A stretch of 64,000 nucleotides of DNA from Phaeosaccion multiseriatum (Eukaryota; Protista; Ochrophyta, other classes), in assembly GCA_965112735.1 (NCBI GenBank), contig OZ218951.1, positions 5,828,001 to 5,892,000 on the forward strand, in the 5' to 3' direction. Shown here piece by piece: positions 55,176-63,826 of the stretch. Position 1 is the stretch's first letter; the number at the start of each line of letters is the position of its first letter. The notes beneath the pieces were generated by a model. The model searched no databases and was not told where the DNA came from. It saw only the letters and a list, made by a program, of their open reading frames with translations. Position numbers and translations under genes: made by a program.

Positions 55176-58100
55176 TCAAGAGCGGCGCGCGGGGAAGGCA
55201 GTCCCCCAAGGCCCATCCACGATGTAATCCTCGTCGTGCACAGACTTCAGGATGGCGTCGCGCCCCTTGAGGGCCTGGCCAGTAGCGGGGTCGAACTTGA
55301 GGGTCTGCGTCTCGCCAAGCACCCCGCTCCACTCCTCCACGCCTTCGTCGTTGGGGGACAGCATCATCACGGCGTCGACGACGTGGGCGTGGCAGCGCTC
55401 CACCTCCTGACGATAATCGATCTGGAACGCGTAGGTGGCCGTCGTGATGTAAACGGACGCCCAGCTGCCGGGCGAGTCGAAGAGGTCACGGTAAATACGC
55501 TTTTCCGCGATCCAGGCCGAGCACGCTTCGCGGTCCTCCATCCTGTGGAGACGAGCCTCCAGGACATCCAGAACACGGAGGTCGGCGGTGATGGCAAATT
55601 CTTCTTCGCTGAGCCGACGAGCACGAGGCTGGACTGTCGCACGCAGCTCCTCCTCCTCCTCCTTCAGCCGGTGCATCATGTGGACATCTCGCTTGGTCTG
55701 GCAGGTTCCAACGATATTGAAAGCCGTGACCGAGTCGCCGTTCTCGAACATGTACTCCCCAGGGGTGGTGATGGTCTCGCCGTTGATGCTCATCTCGAGG
55801 GAGCCCTCGCCGAGGCACACGCCGCCCTCTCCCGCGGGGCACCCGGGGTTGTAGTTGCCCACGTCCTTCACGCCGACTTCAATCTCATAATCGGCGAAGG
55901 TGAAGGCATGCTTCGTGACGTAAGTCTGTAGAGAGGCCGCGAGCAGAGCAGATGCAGCCGGCAGAGCGAGGCGGTGCACAACGTCGACAAGAGAAAGCAT
56001 CGTCAGTGAGATGAATCGGAACCGTCCCACGTGACAAGGAGAACATGGAAGAGACTTGACCTCCTCGCCGTCACTCACCGGCATGAGGCCATCCTCGCAC
56101 TCCTCGAAGACATGGAGGAGCCAGTTCCACTGCAGGTGGTCTTCGGCAAGGGCGGCGAACCACTTGGCGTTGAGGCCCTTGAACAGAAAGCTTTGGCCCT
56201 TGAGGCCCGTCACCACGGGATCGCTGTTGACGCCGACGGTAGCACATACGAGCACACCGCTCGACACGCTGAGGAAAGGCGGGAGAGCGACGTGGATCGA
56301 CCGGGGAAGGAAGAGATTGCAATTGGGAATGAGCTTCCATCTCAGCACGGAATGCCCGTGGATGGATAGGCGTGGCCCGGCGGGCGGCGTGTGTCACTCG
56401 ACAGAGAAAGGGGCGCCAAAAGGCTCAACTGTGGCCTGGCTGCGGAGGGTGTTAATACACGTACACTTACCACCCATCACCGGAGCAGCAGGCGGCCTCA
56501 AGCCCATCAGCAGCTTGGGCAAACTGTGCACCCTGTTGTGCACGCGAGAGGAGGGGCCAGTGCCATAGGGAAAGGAGGACGGGGCATTGCGTGCGTCAGC
56601 AGTCGACAGCCGGGGAAGACACACACCACCGAAAGGGGGGGGGCGGGGATCTGCCTGCGGCAGTGCAGCCCATGTAAAGTGTGTCAGCGCTCCGCTACTA
56701 GCTGCTACCACCTACCACACAGGAGTTGGGTCCAGTGCACAGTGCCGCGGTTCCAGGGCCAAAATCCGCGTCCTGCAAGAGGTGGGACGTGAAGGGAGGA
56801 GGATATGGGGTCTCAGTCAGAGAAGTAGAGCAACCTTAGATAGTGAAAGCAGAACCAGGCCATTGCGGGGTGAGCAGTAGCAGCTGCGAAAGGCATACAG
56901 GTGTGGGATCATCATGGTTGCCAGTGGGAAGCAGTGCACCAGGCCCGCCCCTGCTGATAGAGCGGGCGGGGAGAGCCAAACGGGGTGGCTGCAACGCGTG
57001 GATGCATCATTGTCTCAGCGCTCAAGCCTGTGTGCTGCCACCACGTACCTCACATGAGCCGTCTCCAGTGCACTCTATGGTGGTCGGGGAGTCACCAGTG
57101 ACACCTTGAAGTTTCTGTAAGGCAGAGGCAGGTGGTGGGACGGGAATAAAGGGAGGGATTGTGGTGTTTAGAGAAGCAGCCAGAGCATTCTATGAGAGTA
57201 AAAGCAAGCAGCACCGACGCGATCGAAAGTAGCGCAGAAGAAGTCAGAGTGAGGTGTGTAGCTAGCCAGTCTATCATGGCCTGCCTCTCAAGGCGAGCCG
57301 CCACACAAGAGCGCGGCCGGCCAGCGGTAGCGATACTCGAGTGCAAGGAGATGCCTGGTAGAAGAAATATACTTGCGTCCATCTTCCTTACGGCGCAGGC
57401 GGAAACACCTTCGCACTTACCCTCGTGCCTTCGGGTACTATTGCGGCTGAATCTCTCGAAACTGTGATGCCCTGTTCAAGAGCAGAGAGAGAACAGAGCA
57501 AGCAAAAGACGATGGAGCAAGGAAAGAGAAGGGAGAGCATCATATGCTTGCGAAAGCGGTAGTACATACGATCTGAAGCGAAGCCAAGACGTTGGCAGGG
57601 AGATGCGTTGGCTGGCCAGCCCGTCTATCATGTTGTGCCTCTCAATGACACGAGACCGGCCATGCAATTTGCAAGTCCAGCCATGCAACTTGCAAGGACA
57701 CGGTGGCAGACTGACTCAAGTGCTTAGCTATAGGAAAAGTACACATGCTGTCCATAATCATTCTGCATTTTGCTTACCAGGCAGGATCGCAATCCAATGC
57801 AGACTATCAGTGACCCAGATTCAATCACAGCCTTCTGTTCGAATGCACGCAGGCAGGGGAAGTGTGCACCAGTGGGGCAACAAGAGGTGGCCAGTGGTGG
57901 GACGCGAAGAAAAGGAGGATGCTGGGCGTGAGTCTCCGAGAAAAGAAAGTAGAAAGAAAGAGAATGCAGTAGCTAGCTACCATGTGATTTATCACTAATC
58001 AAGTAGTAAAGCGTAAGGAGAGGTCAGAGGTGAGCGTGTGTTGGGCCAGTATATCATGATCTGCCTCTCAATACGAGCCGCCATGGCACTGCCAGCCAGA

Positions 58101-61100
58101 GCCCGGCGGCAGGCTGACTCAAGGGGAAGCAGATGCCTAGTAGAAGAAGTACACTGGAAGAAGTACTTACCTGGCAGGTTAATTCACCTGCGCATATCCC
58201 ACTTGAGCCGCTGAAAACAGCAAACTGTTCGAATGCACGCAGGCAGGAGTGCACCAGTAGAGCATCAAGAGGTGGCCAGTCGGACGTGAAGAAAAGGAGG
58301 ATACTGGGCGTGAGTCTCCGAGAAAAAGCAGCAGAAAACGTCAGGGACGAAAGCCGTATCACATAATCTACTAAGGTAGACGAAGAGAGGTCAGAACCAG
58401 GCCATTGCGGGGTGAGCAGTAGCAGCTGCGAAAGGTATACAGGTGTGGGATCATCATGGTTGCCAGTGGGAAGCAGTCCACCAGGCCCGCCCCTGCTGAT
58501 AGAGCGGGCGGGGAGAGCCAAACGGGGTGGCTGCAGCGCGTGGATGCATCATTGTCTCAGCGCTCAAGCCCATGTGCTGCCACCACGTACCGCACATGAG
58601 CTGTCTCCAGTGCACGCTGCGGTGGTCCGGGAGACACCAGTGACATCTTGAAGTTTCTGCAAGGCAGAGGCATGTGGTGGGATGGGGGAGGGATTGTGGG
58701 GTTTAGAGAAGCAGCCAGAGCATTCTATGAGAGTAAAAGCAAGCAGCACCGACGCGATCGAAAGTAGCGCAGAAGAGGTCAGAGTGAGGTGTGTAGCTAG
58801 CCAGTTTATCATGGCCTGCCTCTCAAGGCGAGCCGCCACACACGCAAGAGCGTGGCCGGCCAGCGGTAGCGTTACTCGAGTGCAAGGAGATGCCTGGTGG
58901 AAGAAATATACTTGCGTCCATCTTCCTTACGGCGCAGGCGGAAACACCTTCGCACGTACCCTCGTTCCTTCGAGTACTATTGCTGAATCTCTCGAAACTT
59001 TGATGCCCTGTTCAAATGTGCCACAGGAGTGCAGAGAGAGAACAGAGCAAGCAAAAGACGACGGAGCAAGGAAAGAGAAGGGAGAGCATCATATGCTTGA
59101 GAAAGCGGTAGTACCATACGATCTGAAGCGAAGCCAAGACGTTAGGAGGGAGATGCGTTGGCTGGCCAGCCCGTCGATCATGTTGTGCCTCTCAATGACA
59201 TGAGACCCGCCATGCAATTTGCAAGCCCAGCCATGCAACTTGATTGCAAGGACCCAGTGGCAGACTGACTCAAGTGCATAGCTATAGAAAAAGTACCCAT
59301 GCTGTCCACAATCATTCTGTATCTTACAATGCAGGCAAGATGACCCTCGCAGACTATCAGTGACCCAGATTCAATCACAGCGTCCTGTTCGAATGCACGC
59401 AGGCAGGGGAAGTGTACACCAGTGGGGCGACAAGAGGAGGCCAGTGGTGGGACGTGAAGGAGGATGCTGGGCGTGAGTCTCCGAGAAAATAAAAGTAGAA
59501 AGAAAGAGAAAGTAGTAGGGACCATGTGATCTATCACTAATCAAGTAGTAAGGCGTAAGGAGAGGTCAGAGGTGAGTGTGTGTTGGGCCAGTACATCATG
59601 ATCTGCCTCTCAAAACGACCCGCCATGCAAGCAAGAGCCCGACGGCAGGCTCACTCAAGGGGAGGCAGATGCCTAGTAGAAGAAGTACATGATGTGATAA
59701 ATCGATGTCGACATTAGATATCGATGTCATATCGCTGGTACAAGTCCGTTCACTCCTCTAATAGCGGTATGTAGCTAATAAGACGCTTTCCCACAAACCC
59801 GAGCAAGTGCTCCACTGGTCTCTAGAAGAGAGATATCCCAACAGTACATTGGAAGAAGTACTTACCCCGCAGGAAGATTCACCGCATGTCCCCGTTGAGC
59901 CACTGAAAACAGCAAACTGTGTGCACACACGCAGGCAGGAGTGCACCAGTGGAGCATCAAGAGGTGGCCAGTCGGACGTGAAGAAAAGGAGGATACTGGG
60001 CGTGAGTCGTCGAGAAAAAGCAGCAGAAAACGTCGGTGACGAAAGCCGTATCACGTCATCTACTAAGAAGGTACTAGACGAAGAGGTCAGAGGTGAGTGT
60101 GTGTTAGGCCAGTCTATCATGATCTGCCTCTCGATACGAGCCGCCACGCCAGAGCCCGGCGGCAGGCTGACTCAAGGGGAAGCAGATGCCTAGCAGAAGA
60201 AGTACATTGGAAGAAGCACTTACGTCGCAGGAATTTTCACCTGTGCATGTCCCCGTTGAGCCGCCGCTGAAACCCGCCTCCTGTGTGCACACACGCAGGC
60301 AGGAGTGCACCAGCGGAGCATCAAGAGGCGGCCAGTCGGACGTGAAGAAAAGGAGGATGCTGGGCGTGAGCCTTCGAGAAAAAGCAGCAGAAAACGTCAG
60401 TGACGAAAGCCGTATCACGTCTTCTACTAAGAAGGTAGCTAGACGAAGAGGCCAGAGGTGACGTGTGTGTTGGGCCAGTATATCATGATCTGCCTCTCAA
60501 TACGACCCGCCATGCAAGCAAGAGCCCGACGGCAGGCTGACTCAAGGGGAAGCAGATGCCTAGTAGAAGTACATTGGAAGAAGTACTTACCTGGCAGGAA
60601 TTTTCACCTGTGCATGTCCCCGTTGAGCCGCCGCTGAAACCGGCCTCCTGTGTGCACACACGCAGGCAGGAGTGCACCAGTGGAGCATCAAGAGGCGGCC
60701 AGTCGGACGTGAAGAAAAGGAGGATGCTGGGCGTGAGCCTTCGAGAAAAAGCAGCAGAAAACGTCAGTGACGAAAGCCGTATCACGTCTTCTACTAAGAA
60801 GGTAGCTAGACGAAGAGGCCAGAGGTGACGTGTGTGTTGGGCCAGTATATCATGATCTGCCTCTCAATACGACCCGCCATGCAAGCAAGAGCCCGACGGC
60901 AGGCTGACTCAAGGGGAAGCAGATGCCTAGTAGAAGGACATTGGAAGAAGTACTTACCAGGCAGGAAAATTCACCAGTGCATGTCCCCGTTGAGCCACTG
61001 AAACCGGCCTCCTGTGTGCACACATGCAGGCAGGAGTGCACCAGTGGAGCATCAAGAGGCGGCCAGTCGGACGTGAAGAAAAGGAGGATGCTGGGCGTGA

Positions 61101-63826
61101 GTCTTCGAGAAAAAGCAGCAGAAAACGTCAGTGACGAAAGCGTATCACGTCATCTACTAAGAAGGTAGCTAGACGAAGAGGTCAGAGGTGACGTGTGTGT
61201 TGGGCCAGTATATCATGATCTGCCTCTCAATACGACCCGCCATGCAAGCAAGAGCCCGACGGCAGGCTGACTCAAGGGGAAGAGGATGCCTAGCAGAAGA
61301 AGTACATTGGAAAAGTACTTACGTCGCAGGTTAATTCACCTGCGCATATCCCACTTGAGCCGCCGCTGAAACCGGCCTCCTGTGTGCACACACGCAGGCA
61401 GGAGTGCGCCAGTGGAGCATCAAGAGGCGGCCGGTCGGACGTGAAGAAAAGGAGGATGCTGGAGCGTGCGTCTTCGAGAAAGCGCAGCAGAAAACGTCAG
61501 TGACGAAAGCCGTCTCACTTCATCTAGCTACTAAGAAGGTAGACGAAGAGAGGTCAGAGGTGAGGTGTGTGTTGGGCCAATATATCATGATCTGCCTCTC
61601 AATACGACCCGCCATGCAAGCAAGAGCCCGACGGCAGGCTGACTCAAGGGGAAGCAGATGCCTAGTAGAAGGACATTGGAAGAAGTACTTACCTTGCAGG
61701 ACAATACACCTGTGCATGTCCCCGTTGAGCCGCCGCTGAAAATGGCCCCCTGTGTGCACACACGCAGGCAGGTGTGCACCAGTGGAGCATCAAGAGGCGG
61801 CCAGTCGGGCGTGAAGAAAAGGAGGATGCTGGGCGTGAGTCTTCGAGAAAAAGCAGCAGAAAACGTCGGTGACGAAGCCGTATCACGTCATCTAGCTACT
61901 AAGAAGGTAGACGAAGAGAGCTCAGAGGTGAGCGTGTGTTGGGCCAGACTATCATGATTTGCCTCTCAATACGAGCCACCATGCAAGAACCCGGCGGCAG
62001 GCTGACGAGAGGCAGATCCTTGCGTAGATGGTAGAAGAAGTATATCACGTGAAGTATATGGTGCTCATCTTCCTCTATCTTACCGAGCAGGTACGGTCGT
62101 TACCATCGCAGTCCACCTGTGAGCCTTCGAACTTGGATGGGTTTCCCGGTTCAGACTGTGGCAGGGTTAGCACGCAGGCAGGCAGGAGTGCACCAGCGGA
62201 GCAACAAGAGGTGGTCAGCGGGACGTGAAGAAAGGGAGGATGCAGGGCGTGAGTCTCCAAGCACTACTACAAAGTCAGTGAAAGCCGTTCCACCCATCCA
62301 CGAAGGCCGAAGAGAGGTCAGAGATGGGGAGTCTTAGAAGAAGTACATGCATCTCCGTCTTCCTTACCTGGCAGGACCCTACACCAATGCAACCAACCAC
62401 TGAATCGAGAGACATGATGCCCTGTTCAAATGCAAGCAGCAGGAGTGCAAGTGGAGCAAGAGGTGGCCAGAGGGACGTGAAGAAAGTGACGATGCAGGGC
62501 GTGAGTCTCCAAGCACTATAAAGTAAGTGAAAGCCGTTCCACCCATCCACGAAGGCCGAAGAGACGTCAGAGGTGGGGTAGTCTTAGTAGAAGAAGTACA
62601 TGCATGTCCGCCTTCCTTACCAGGCAGGATTGTGGACCAGTGCAAGCGCTGACACCGGCTGTCTGTGTGTTGGAGACACTGGCTCTCTGTGCGCACGCAG
62701 GCAGGCAGGAGTGCACCAGTGGAGCAACAAGAGGTGACCAGAGGGACGTGAAGAAGGGGAGGATGCAGGGCGTGAGTCTCCAAGCACTACTACAAAGTCA
62801 GTCAAAGCCGTTCCACCCACCCACAAAGGCCGAAGAGAGGTCAGAGGTGGGGTAGTCTTAGTAGAAGAAGTACATGCAGCCATGTCCGTCTTCCTTACCT
62901 CGCAGGAACCTGGACCAACGCAAAGCAGATCTGAATCGTCAGACGTGATGTCCTGTTCAAATGCACGCAGCAGGAGTACAAGTGGAGCAAGAGGTGGCCA
63001 GAGGGACGAAAAGAAAGGGAGGATGCAGGGCGTGAGTCTCCAAGCACTATAAACACCCGTCGGTGAAAGCCGTTCCACCCATCCACGAAGGCCGAAGAGA
63101 GGTCAGAGGTGGGGTAGTCTTAGTAGAAGAAGTATATGCATGTCCGTCTTCCTTACCTCGCAGGAATCTGGACCACGGCAAACCACATCTGAAGCGGTAG
63201 ACGTGATGTCCTGTTCAAATGCAAGCAGCAGGAGTACAAGTGGAGCAAGAGGTGGCCAGACGCGAAGAAAAGGAGGATGTTGGGCCTGAGTCTCCGAGAG
63301 AAAGCAGCACACTATGTGAGTAAAAGCCGTACGACGCGAACTACTACTATCATGATCTGCCTCTCAAGGCGATCCGCCATGATTCACTCCCCCCCCCTCT
63401 TTTCCTTCCGTACCGAGCAGGAATCTGATGCGGAGCATTCCGCCCTTGATTGCGAGGTCAACTCAACACCCTGTGTGCAAGCAGGCAGGCAGTTGTGCAC
63501 CAGAGGAGCAACAAGAGGAGGCCAGAGGGACGTGAAGAAAAGGAGCATGCAGGGCGTGAGTCTCCGAGAAAACGAACTTTAAACACGAAGTGAAAGCCGA
63601 ACCAGAGATTGGTGTACTGTGGGGAAGAGTGTACTGTGGGGAAGAGTGGTCAGAGGTGAGGTGTGTGTTACGGTGTCTCCGGGGTGTCGCTCCCCTGACG
63701 GGGGCGAACGGCAGCTTGACTCAAGGGGAAGCAGATGCTTATAACTAGGCTGTTGTCCGCCTTTCTTACCGGGCAGGCGTCCGCAGCAGCGCAGAGCGCA
63801 GTTGCATCCGAGTCAAACGTGGAGTC
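55176..63826 (-). CDS. Cys-repeat cassette-exon protein with VWD-like C-terminal domain (5' end outside the window)
   Basis: 21 cassette exons are followed by cap exon 56471-56532 (phase 0-2), exon 56079-56268 (CVSSG..NSDPVVTGLKGQSFLFKG..WFA) and terminal exon 55176-55925 (..GVLGET). Phases join in frame, using internal donors for the two frameshifted cassettes. Confidence 0.82.

Follow-up and report, generated by a model that had tools for sequence, protein, structure and literature searches.

Architecture of the micro-exon gene

The window analysed here comprises 64,000 nucleotides of the Phaeosaccion multiseriatum genome (contig OZ218951.1, positions 5,828,001–5,892,000), a GC-rich stretch of algal and not human DNA with many microsatellites, from an assembly of 67 Mb in 22 contigs. 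On its minus strand, positions 58171–61749 hold an array of seven phase 0 exons of 51–57 nt (u1 to u7, Table 1) with intervening introns of ~310 nt, each exon translating into one two-cysteine repeat of 17–19 residues. An earlier note on this DNA had read the exons as mosaics generated by recombination or gene conversion, and the exon translations it quoted are all exact on the minus strand. Tandem Repeats Finder describes the array as 5.9 copies of a 367 bp period with 91% matches, and the units follow one another head to tail at a spacing of 364–370 bp, exon included. Two units of the array are 98–99% identical. The near-identity that had been claimed for the ~310-nt introns is confirmed for those at 60281–60590 and 60648–60957, each of 310 nt, which differ at two positions (308/310 identical). 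Units u1 and u2 occupy corresponding positions in the two copies of a higher-order duplication of four exons.

We conclude, reading the sequence, that the host gene of the array is a real but unannotated minus-strand gene, of which this stretch would form the middle. It runs from an ATG exon with the appearance of a signal peptide (MKLTVAILLSFWTSATA..., judged by eye) lying ~3.6 kb beyond the end of the window, through dozens of phase 0 micro-exons, to two larger exons and a stop at 55176. Across 56.7–63.8 kb the micro-exons measure 51–72 nt and are all multiples of three and in phase 0, and so fall within the definition used for micro-exon genes (MEGs; mostly symmetric exons of up to 81 bp). 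All seven array exons are flanked by CAG on one side and GTAAGT on the other and have lengths divisible by three, and in the seven-unit alignment exon indels are of 3 nt, compared to 1, 2, 4 and 6 nt in the introns. The units are considered coding because of these canonical splice sites, the exon lengths and indels in multiples of three, and the recurrence of the 19-residue framework with unrelated introns at ten or more loci (see below).

The two larger exons encode a C-terminal domain with relatives elsewhere. A HMMER search of 1.8 billion protein representatives returned 100 relatives of this end domain at E ≤ 0.001, including 27 at ≤ 1e-30, and the window's two exons show 35–40% identity to the family that these form. 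The domain is always C-terminal in the relatives, following varied front parts that include subtilase and gametolysin-type peptidase, and none of the 100 listed relatives carries the micro-exon repeat array. At least 27 near-full copies of the end domain are present in the genome. A structural model of one homologue (pLDDT 80.6, with the window exons included in its alignment) matches 34 von Willebrand D (VWD) entries, among them VWF, mucins, MUC2, FCGBP and RGMB, with Z scores of 9.6–12.9; the best match (Z 12.9) superposes 150 residues with an rmsd of 2.6, and the next-ranked fold has Z 3.2. On the strength of this homologue model the end domain is assigned a VWD fold. It resembles the VWD domains of VWF, gel-forming mucins, FCGBP and RGM in fold and in a D-P motif in GDPx context at the domain start, but is unlike them in several respects: the motif reads NSDPVV in the window and GDP[VIL] in the homologues, retaining D-P without the His of GDPH; there is a helical insert of ~50 residues; and the domain always stands last, after varied passenger regions. 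Pfam, including VWD PF00094, found no family for the end-domain open reading frame (ORF), for the ORF running through u1 or for the end domains of eight homologues. The 390-aa ORF had no hit in a word-index protein search, and searches of the ESM Atlas and of PDB sequences likewise gave no match.

Table 1. Location of the features described in the text (window positions, except where a contig is named)
Feature	Position	Strand	Description
Micro-exon u1	58171–58224	-	54 nt, FAVFSGSSGICAGELTCQ; chimera: 5' part u2-like, loop identical to u6, last codon as u4
Micro-exon u2	59866–59916	-	51 nt, FAVFSGSTGTCGESSCG; counterpart of u1 in copy B of the 1.54-kb duplication
Micro-exon u3	60224–60280	-	57 nt, EAGFSGGSTGTCTGENSCD (...TGENSCD); equals u4 through the loop; last codon GAC and start of downstream intron u6-like
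Micro-exon u4	60591–60647	-	57 nt, EAGFSGGSTGTCTGENSCQ (...TGENSCQ)
Micro-exon u5	60958–61011	-	54 nt, EAGFSGSTGTCTGEFSCL (...TGEFSCL); AGT-GGC (single G) in common with u2
Micro-exon u6	61323–61379	-	57 nt, EAGFSGGSSGICAGELTCD; flanks u4/u5-like, run of 9 consecutive u1-type sites
Micro-exon u7	61693–61749	-	57 nt, GAIFSGGSTGTCTGVLSCK (...TGVLSCK); edge unit of the 367-bp array
Six homologous introns	59917–62083	-	307–334 nt, alternating with exons u3–u7: 59917–60223, 60281–60590, 60648–60957, 61012–61322, 61380–61692, 61750–62083
38-nt block in u1	58174–58211	-	Wholly within the exon; identical to 61326–61363
38-nt block in u6	61326–61363	-	Second copy; sole other copy in the 67-Mb genome
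Duplication copy A	56852–58355	-	~1.54 kb, four exons; holds u1
Duplication copy B	58392–60047	-	~1.54 kb, four exons; holds u2
First end-domain exon	56079–56268	-	First exon of the C-terminal VWD-like domain (...NSDPVVTGLKGQSFLFKG...)
Last exon	55176–55925	-	249 codons and stop, remainder of the VWD-like domain
Insertion	59690–59846		~154 nt, in the intron downstream of u2, copy B only; duplicated ATGTA(C) flanks
Second array	contig 13:798427–801790	-	Twelve 57-nt exons, 302-bp period; e.g. NANLHDTSSATCTADDSCW, DVRLHDTSSATCTADDSCW, NANLHDTSSAACTGVASCY
Third array	contig 7:1534046–1538901	+	57-nt exons, 232-bp period; e.g. YAFFQDTSTATCSGEDSCH

Mosaic structure of the seven units

The affinities of u1 change along its length. 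Its upstream intron is closest to that of u2 (137/149 identical, compared to 135/149 for u4 and 128/149 for u6), as are nucleotides 1–24 of the exon (20/21, compared to 16/21 for both u6 and u4), whereas the loop is that of u6 (28/28, compared to 20/28 for u4 and 19/25 for u2) and the last five bases agree fully with u4 (5/5, compared to 3/5 for both u2 and u6). The proposal that u1 joins a u2-type 5' part to a u6-type loop is thus borne out. Units u1 and u6 are identical over 38 nt, with flanks that are 86–93% alike. Five diagnostic loop sites in gap-free columns are common to u1 and u6 only, all within 24 nt, and approximately eight differences, counted by eye in the alignment, separate the block from u3 and u4. 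No third copy of the patch and no external donor was found in the genome with up to three mismatches allowed, and two exact-pattern scans of metagenome contigs, with one exon word and one intron word, gave no match. With two breakpoints within 54 nt, the patch would fit a conversion tract of ~24–38 nt, although two separate crossovers would look alike and the direction of transfer is not readable from it.

A different pattern is seen in u3, which is the same as u4 in the upstream intron and in the exon as far as the loop, but differs from it precisely from the last codon on. This looks like a single crossover junction, and supports exchange over recurrent mutation. The last codons of u1 to u7 are CAG, GGG, GAC, CAG, CTG, GAC and AAG, and all four of the ending combinations described in the earlier note are present (TCD in u6, TCQ in u1, SCD in u3 and SCQ in u4). 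The independent assortment that it ascribed to this codon stands only in part, since the codon does not vary freely: where it is GAC, in u3 and u6, both units also have the same variant within the initial ~45 nt of the next intron, a linkage that in itself speaks for exchange. Similarly, the one-codon G/GG indel is present, with a single G in u1, u2 and u5 and GG in the other units, but it falls in a GGC-GGC tandem in which slippage could recur; u2 and u5 have the neighbouring AGT in common as well as the single G.

For statistical analysis the seven units were centred on the exon and aligned with 150 nt on each side, giving 349 usable columns with 67 polymorphic gap-free sites, of which 29 are informative. 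Among pairs of informative sites 42% are incompatible, and the Hudson-Kaplan minimum number of recombination events (Rm) is at least 5, two of them inside the exon. In a pairwise homoplasy index (PHI)-type permutation the compatibility of neighbouring sites far exceeds that obtained by shuffling (p < 0.0002 with a window of 3 informative sites, 0.0014 with 5). Separate trees for the exon parts and introns are incongruent, where the earlier note had named congruence as the outcome that would count against its claim. The proximal upstream intron together with the 5' part of the exon groups u1 with u2 at 99/99, a split backed by seven clustered sites, and the approximately unbiased (AU) test rejects grouping of u1 with u6 for this segment (p = 0.008). 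Over the loop no difference separates u1 from u6 or u3 from u4, and for the last codon and downstream intron the AU test rejects the grouping of u3 with u4 (p = 0.024). A 3SEQ-style test of 198 triplets with Bonferroni correction identified u4 given u3 and u1 (p = 1.3e-4, corrected 0.025) and u6 given u5 and u1 (p = 2.0e-4, corrected 0.04), the latter reflecting nine consecutive u1-type sites in a u5-type background.

These results uphold the earlier claim of exchange (by PHI, AU and triplet tests), with the qualification that it is not special to exons, since mosaicism extends to the introns. Of the five minimal breakpoint intervals, three fall in introns, and two alternative intron forms around GCCG[T/C]CGGG (types A and B) assort among the units as well. 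Exchange targeted to exons was dropped as an explanation, given that exons account for 2/5 breakpoint intervals here and 4/15 in a second array while holding about half of the informative sites; exchange is most visible in the exons because it is there that the units differ.

Sister arrays and the contrast between exons and introns

A profile of the seven exons gave a weak match on contig 13 that corresponds to the second array in Table 1. Its ten complete units show the same type of signal (PHI p = 0.004–0.011, Rm = 15, with four inside the 57-nt exon), and the presence of a mosaic in this independent array indicates that mosaicism characterises arrays of this kind rather than a single locus. 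Combinatorial assortment of the first codons, the loop and the last codon is clear among the contig 13 units, and in the unit at 799944–800000 a glycine replaces the second cysteine.

The repeat follows the framework xAxFxGxSxxxCxGxxSCx of ~19 residues, in which A2, S8, C12, S17 and C18 are nearly fixed. A profile of 21 micro-exons drawn from the three arrays locates this framework at ten or more loci of the genome, at least eight of them a few kb upstream of a same-strand VWD-like domain. The contig 7 array lies ~4 kb upstream of such a domain on the same strand (contig 7:1542766–1543518). On contig 3 (5093208–5101576), eight equal-scoring micro-exon matches to the profile alternate between spacings of ~1.15 and ~1.22 kb, a pattern suggestive of a higher-order array that was homogenised very recently. 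A region of contig 5 (705066–732328) holds three tandem VWD-like end domains at ~13-kb spacing, 79% identical to that of the gene studied here; when the 10 kb upstream of the middle copy were briefly scanned, no 19-residue micro-exons of the present type were seen.

Exons and introns of the array differ in diversity. Pairwise diversity is ~3 times higher in the exons (0.183) than in the flanking introns (0.061), and 18/51 exon columns are polymorphic compared to 49/281 intron columns (Fisher p = 0.007). The two copies of the 1.54-kb duplication have diverged by 12.4% in their exons compared to 5.4% in their introns (p = 4e-4), and some of this excess among recent duplicates was itself brought in by patches such as that in u1. 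The direction is the same in the contig 13 array (0.149 in exons, 0.086 in introns). The array introns match other introns of their own gene at 1e-16 to 1e-31, but show no detectable similarity to the introns of the contig 13 and contig 7 arrays (E > 2), and the unit DNA was found at this locus only in a search of the genome. To judge from these comparisons, the introns are homogenised within the gene and turned over between genes. This is most simply explained if whole units evolve in concert while selection maintains, or at any rate permits, differences among the loops.

There is no case for a structured intronic RNA. Rfam gave no match on 55–64 kb, and a consensus fold of the six introns contained 75 pairs with essentially no covariation. 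In the intronic hairpin prediction at GCCG[T/C]CGGG...GGCGG[G/C] (59917–62083; alignment columns 82–114) there is one apparent compensatory change, from U-A to C-G in intron 59917–60223, with variation too small to judge it.

Two further observations concern the higher-order duplication. Its sister exons at 57392–57468 and 58931–59007 would be out of frame if spliced at the distal donor (80 and 77 nt), while use of an internal GTAAGT/GTACGT donor would preserve the frame, with exons of 51 and 48 nt but no cysteine loop. The insertion at 59690–59846 is younger than the duplication. It belongs to a dispersed repeat family with at least 44 copies of 75–87% identity, and is probably a solo long terminal repeat (LTR), because many copies of the family occur as same-orientation pairs, 3–5.6 kb apart.

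Origin of the mosaic and its wider meaning

We propose, with a probability of roughly 0.8, that an unannotated gene for a secreted-type protein acquired tandem units which were afterwards reshuffled by germline unequal crossing-over and short-tract conversion. The seven FSG-type units would have been born by tandem duplication of exon-plus-intron units, the near-identical introns of ~310 nt providing the homology for exchange. Unequal crossing-over would leave chimeras with a single junction, such as u3, and short-tract gene conversion or paired crossovers would leave patches of ~24–38 nt, such as the loop common to u1 and u6; this division between crossover and conversion is one that we infer. 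Exchange would act on the whole unit, so that concerted evolution keeps the introns alike within the gene, while exon positions outside the Cys/Gly/Ser framework would stay diverse, most likely via selection favouring or tolerating different loops.

Several points weigh against this reading. The triplet that corresponds to the chimera of the earlier note, u1 given u2 and u6, has p of 0.007–0.012, which is significant nominally but not after correction. A GENECONV-type check, which the note had also put forward, does not bear it out globally: in our run test u1–u6 ranked first (pairwise p = 0.019), but the global p of 0.13 is not significant, the test having low power because gapped columns were excluded. 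Summed over pairs, pN is 0.20 and pS 0.125, a ratio of 1.6 in which pS is noisy, with only ~12 synonymous sites in each exon, and polymorphic columns are not significantly in excess in the exons of the contig 13 array (p = 0.41). With only seven short units, tract lengths, direction and dates are not fixable; the order of the units is that given by the assembly, and the splicing of the micro-exons is predicted from the sequence.

Among the alternatives, we think it unlikely that this is a diversity-generating locus, at which short-patch conversion among cassette exons, perhaps together with combinatorial exon skipping, gives a secreted and VWD-anchored recognition protein binding loops that vary in a population or even in a clone. 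A related and rather improbable proposal is that the diversification is programmed or somatic, with cassettes undergoing recombination or conversion within a clone's lifetime, or being selected in combinations by exon skipping, so as to vary a surface protein. The symmetry and common phase 0 of the exons mean that any subset could be skipped in frame, the variable positions fall in loops between fixed cysteines, and the exchanged tract is short and patch-like, all of which such a system might display. However, a silent donor array is lacking, as FSG-type exons and the unit DNA were found at this locus only; the introns are mosaic as well as the exons, and yielded neither a recombinase signal nor a conserved RNA structure; nor can one static assembly show somatic change.

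The chance is equally slim that the mosaic is an artefact of assembly or polishing, in which reads misplaced among near-identical units produced a chimeric consensus. Polishing can copy variants between repeats as similar as the two units that are 98–99% identical. Unit u1, however, lies in the separate 1.54-kb higher-order context, with flanks so unlike those of u6 (86–93% identity) that reads would place uniquely. The 67-Mb genome is assembled in 22 contigs, and a like mosaic is present in the independent contig 13 array, which has other introns.

It is very unlikely that the units are non-coding, that is, a satellite with a chance open segment. While no database protein was seen to contain the repeat, none of the 100 end-domain relatives having such an array, the reading frame, the Cys/Gly/Ser framework and indels in multiples of three have been kept despite 18% exon diversity, and at ten or more loci the same 19-residue unit recurs with unrelated introns, in association with an exon for a signal peptide and with a conserved end domain. 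Strongly disfavoured is a history without any exchange, in which serial duplication alone made the units, and recurrent mutation or convergent selection on loops made the shared blocks. Such a history could explain the G/GG indel, since slippage recurs easily in a GGC-GGC tandem codon, and the last codon is hypervariable, so that some repeats of D and Q may be due to chance. It does not accommodate 38 nt of nucleotide identity with sites confined to u1 and u6 within 24 nt, the {u1,u2} split with its seven clustered sites, the spatial clustering detected by PHI or the rejection of a common tree by the AU test. Finally, near-identical introns dispersed in unrelated genes are known from marine algae as introner elements (PMC4540971), but repeated insertion of mobile introns not duplicated together with the exons was rejected here: although the array too holds many near-identical introns in an algal genome, they are not introners because they are confined to one gene, the unit DNA is found only at this locus without similarity to the sister-array introns, and exon and intron duplicate together as a head-to-tail repeat of fixed 364–370 bp spacing.

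Unequal crossing-over with short-tract conversion among tandem units is a textbook mechanism. The setting is undescribed and unusual, combining one structural repeat per micro-exon, homogenised introns and diverse exons in an algal VWD-ended family with predicted secretion. In MHC class I genes, patchwork short-tract conversion of motifs of tens of bp has produced mosaic exons, with introns more uniform than the selected exon positions. The algal array is similar in its short exchanged motifs, mosaic exons and more uniform introns, but MHC exchange takes place between alleles and loci of a family and not between repeats inside one gene. In spider silk genes (Argiope MaSp2 and flagelliform spidroins), iterated exon-intron pairs have introns that are homogenised within the gene and divergent between paralogues, unequal crossing-over via repeated introns is the proposed driver, and the exons are homogenised as well, with ensemble repeats 79–99% identical (PMC9779670). 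Tandem exon-plus-intron units in one gene and homogenisation of introns within it are found here too, whereas the algal exons, of 51–57 nt and encoding disulfide-type repeats, are not homogenised but ~3 times more diverse than the introns. Schistosome MEGs have mostly symmetric exons of 3–81 bp, secreted products, fast evolution and documented alternative splicing (PMC10526429, PMC4350168). The algal gene likewise has a coding region mostly of very short symmetric exons, a predicted secreted product and fast evolution, but in MEGs the introns are long, without tandem homogenisation, and the exons do not each encode one structural repeat. The array thus resembles MEGs in layout and silk genes in intron behaviour, and is a member of neither.

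The tests and the second array show that exon-sized protein repeats in a microalga undergo reshuffling by recombination over a few tens of bases, with the introns serving as a homogenised scaffold. The combination of diverse exons with homogenised introns is the reverse of the silk-gene pattern, and points to an unannotated protein family, predicted to be secreted, in which diversifying selection may act on the variable loops. The finding also carries the warning that gene predictors miss such genes, as the want of a repeat array in every listed end-domain relative illustrates. Were the reading as a diversity-generating locus true, the gene would be an algal analogue of cassette-based variable receptors.

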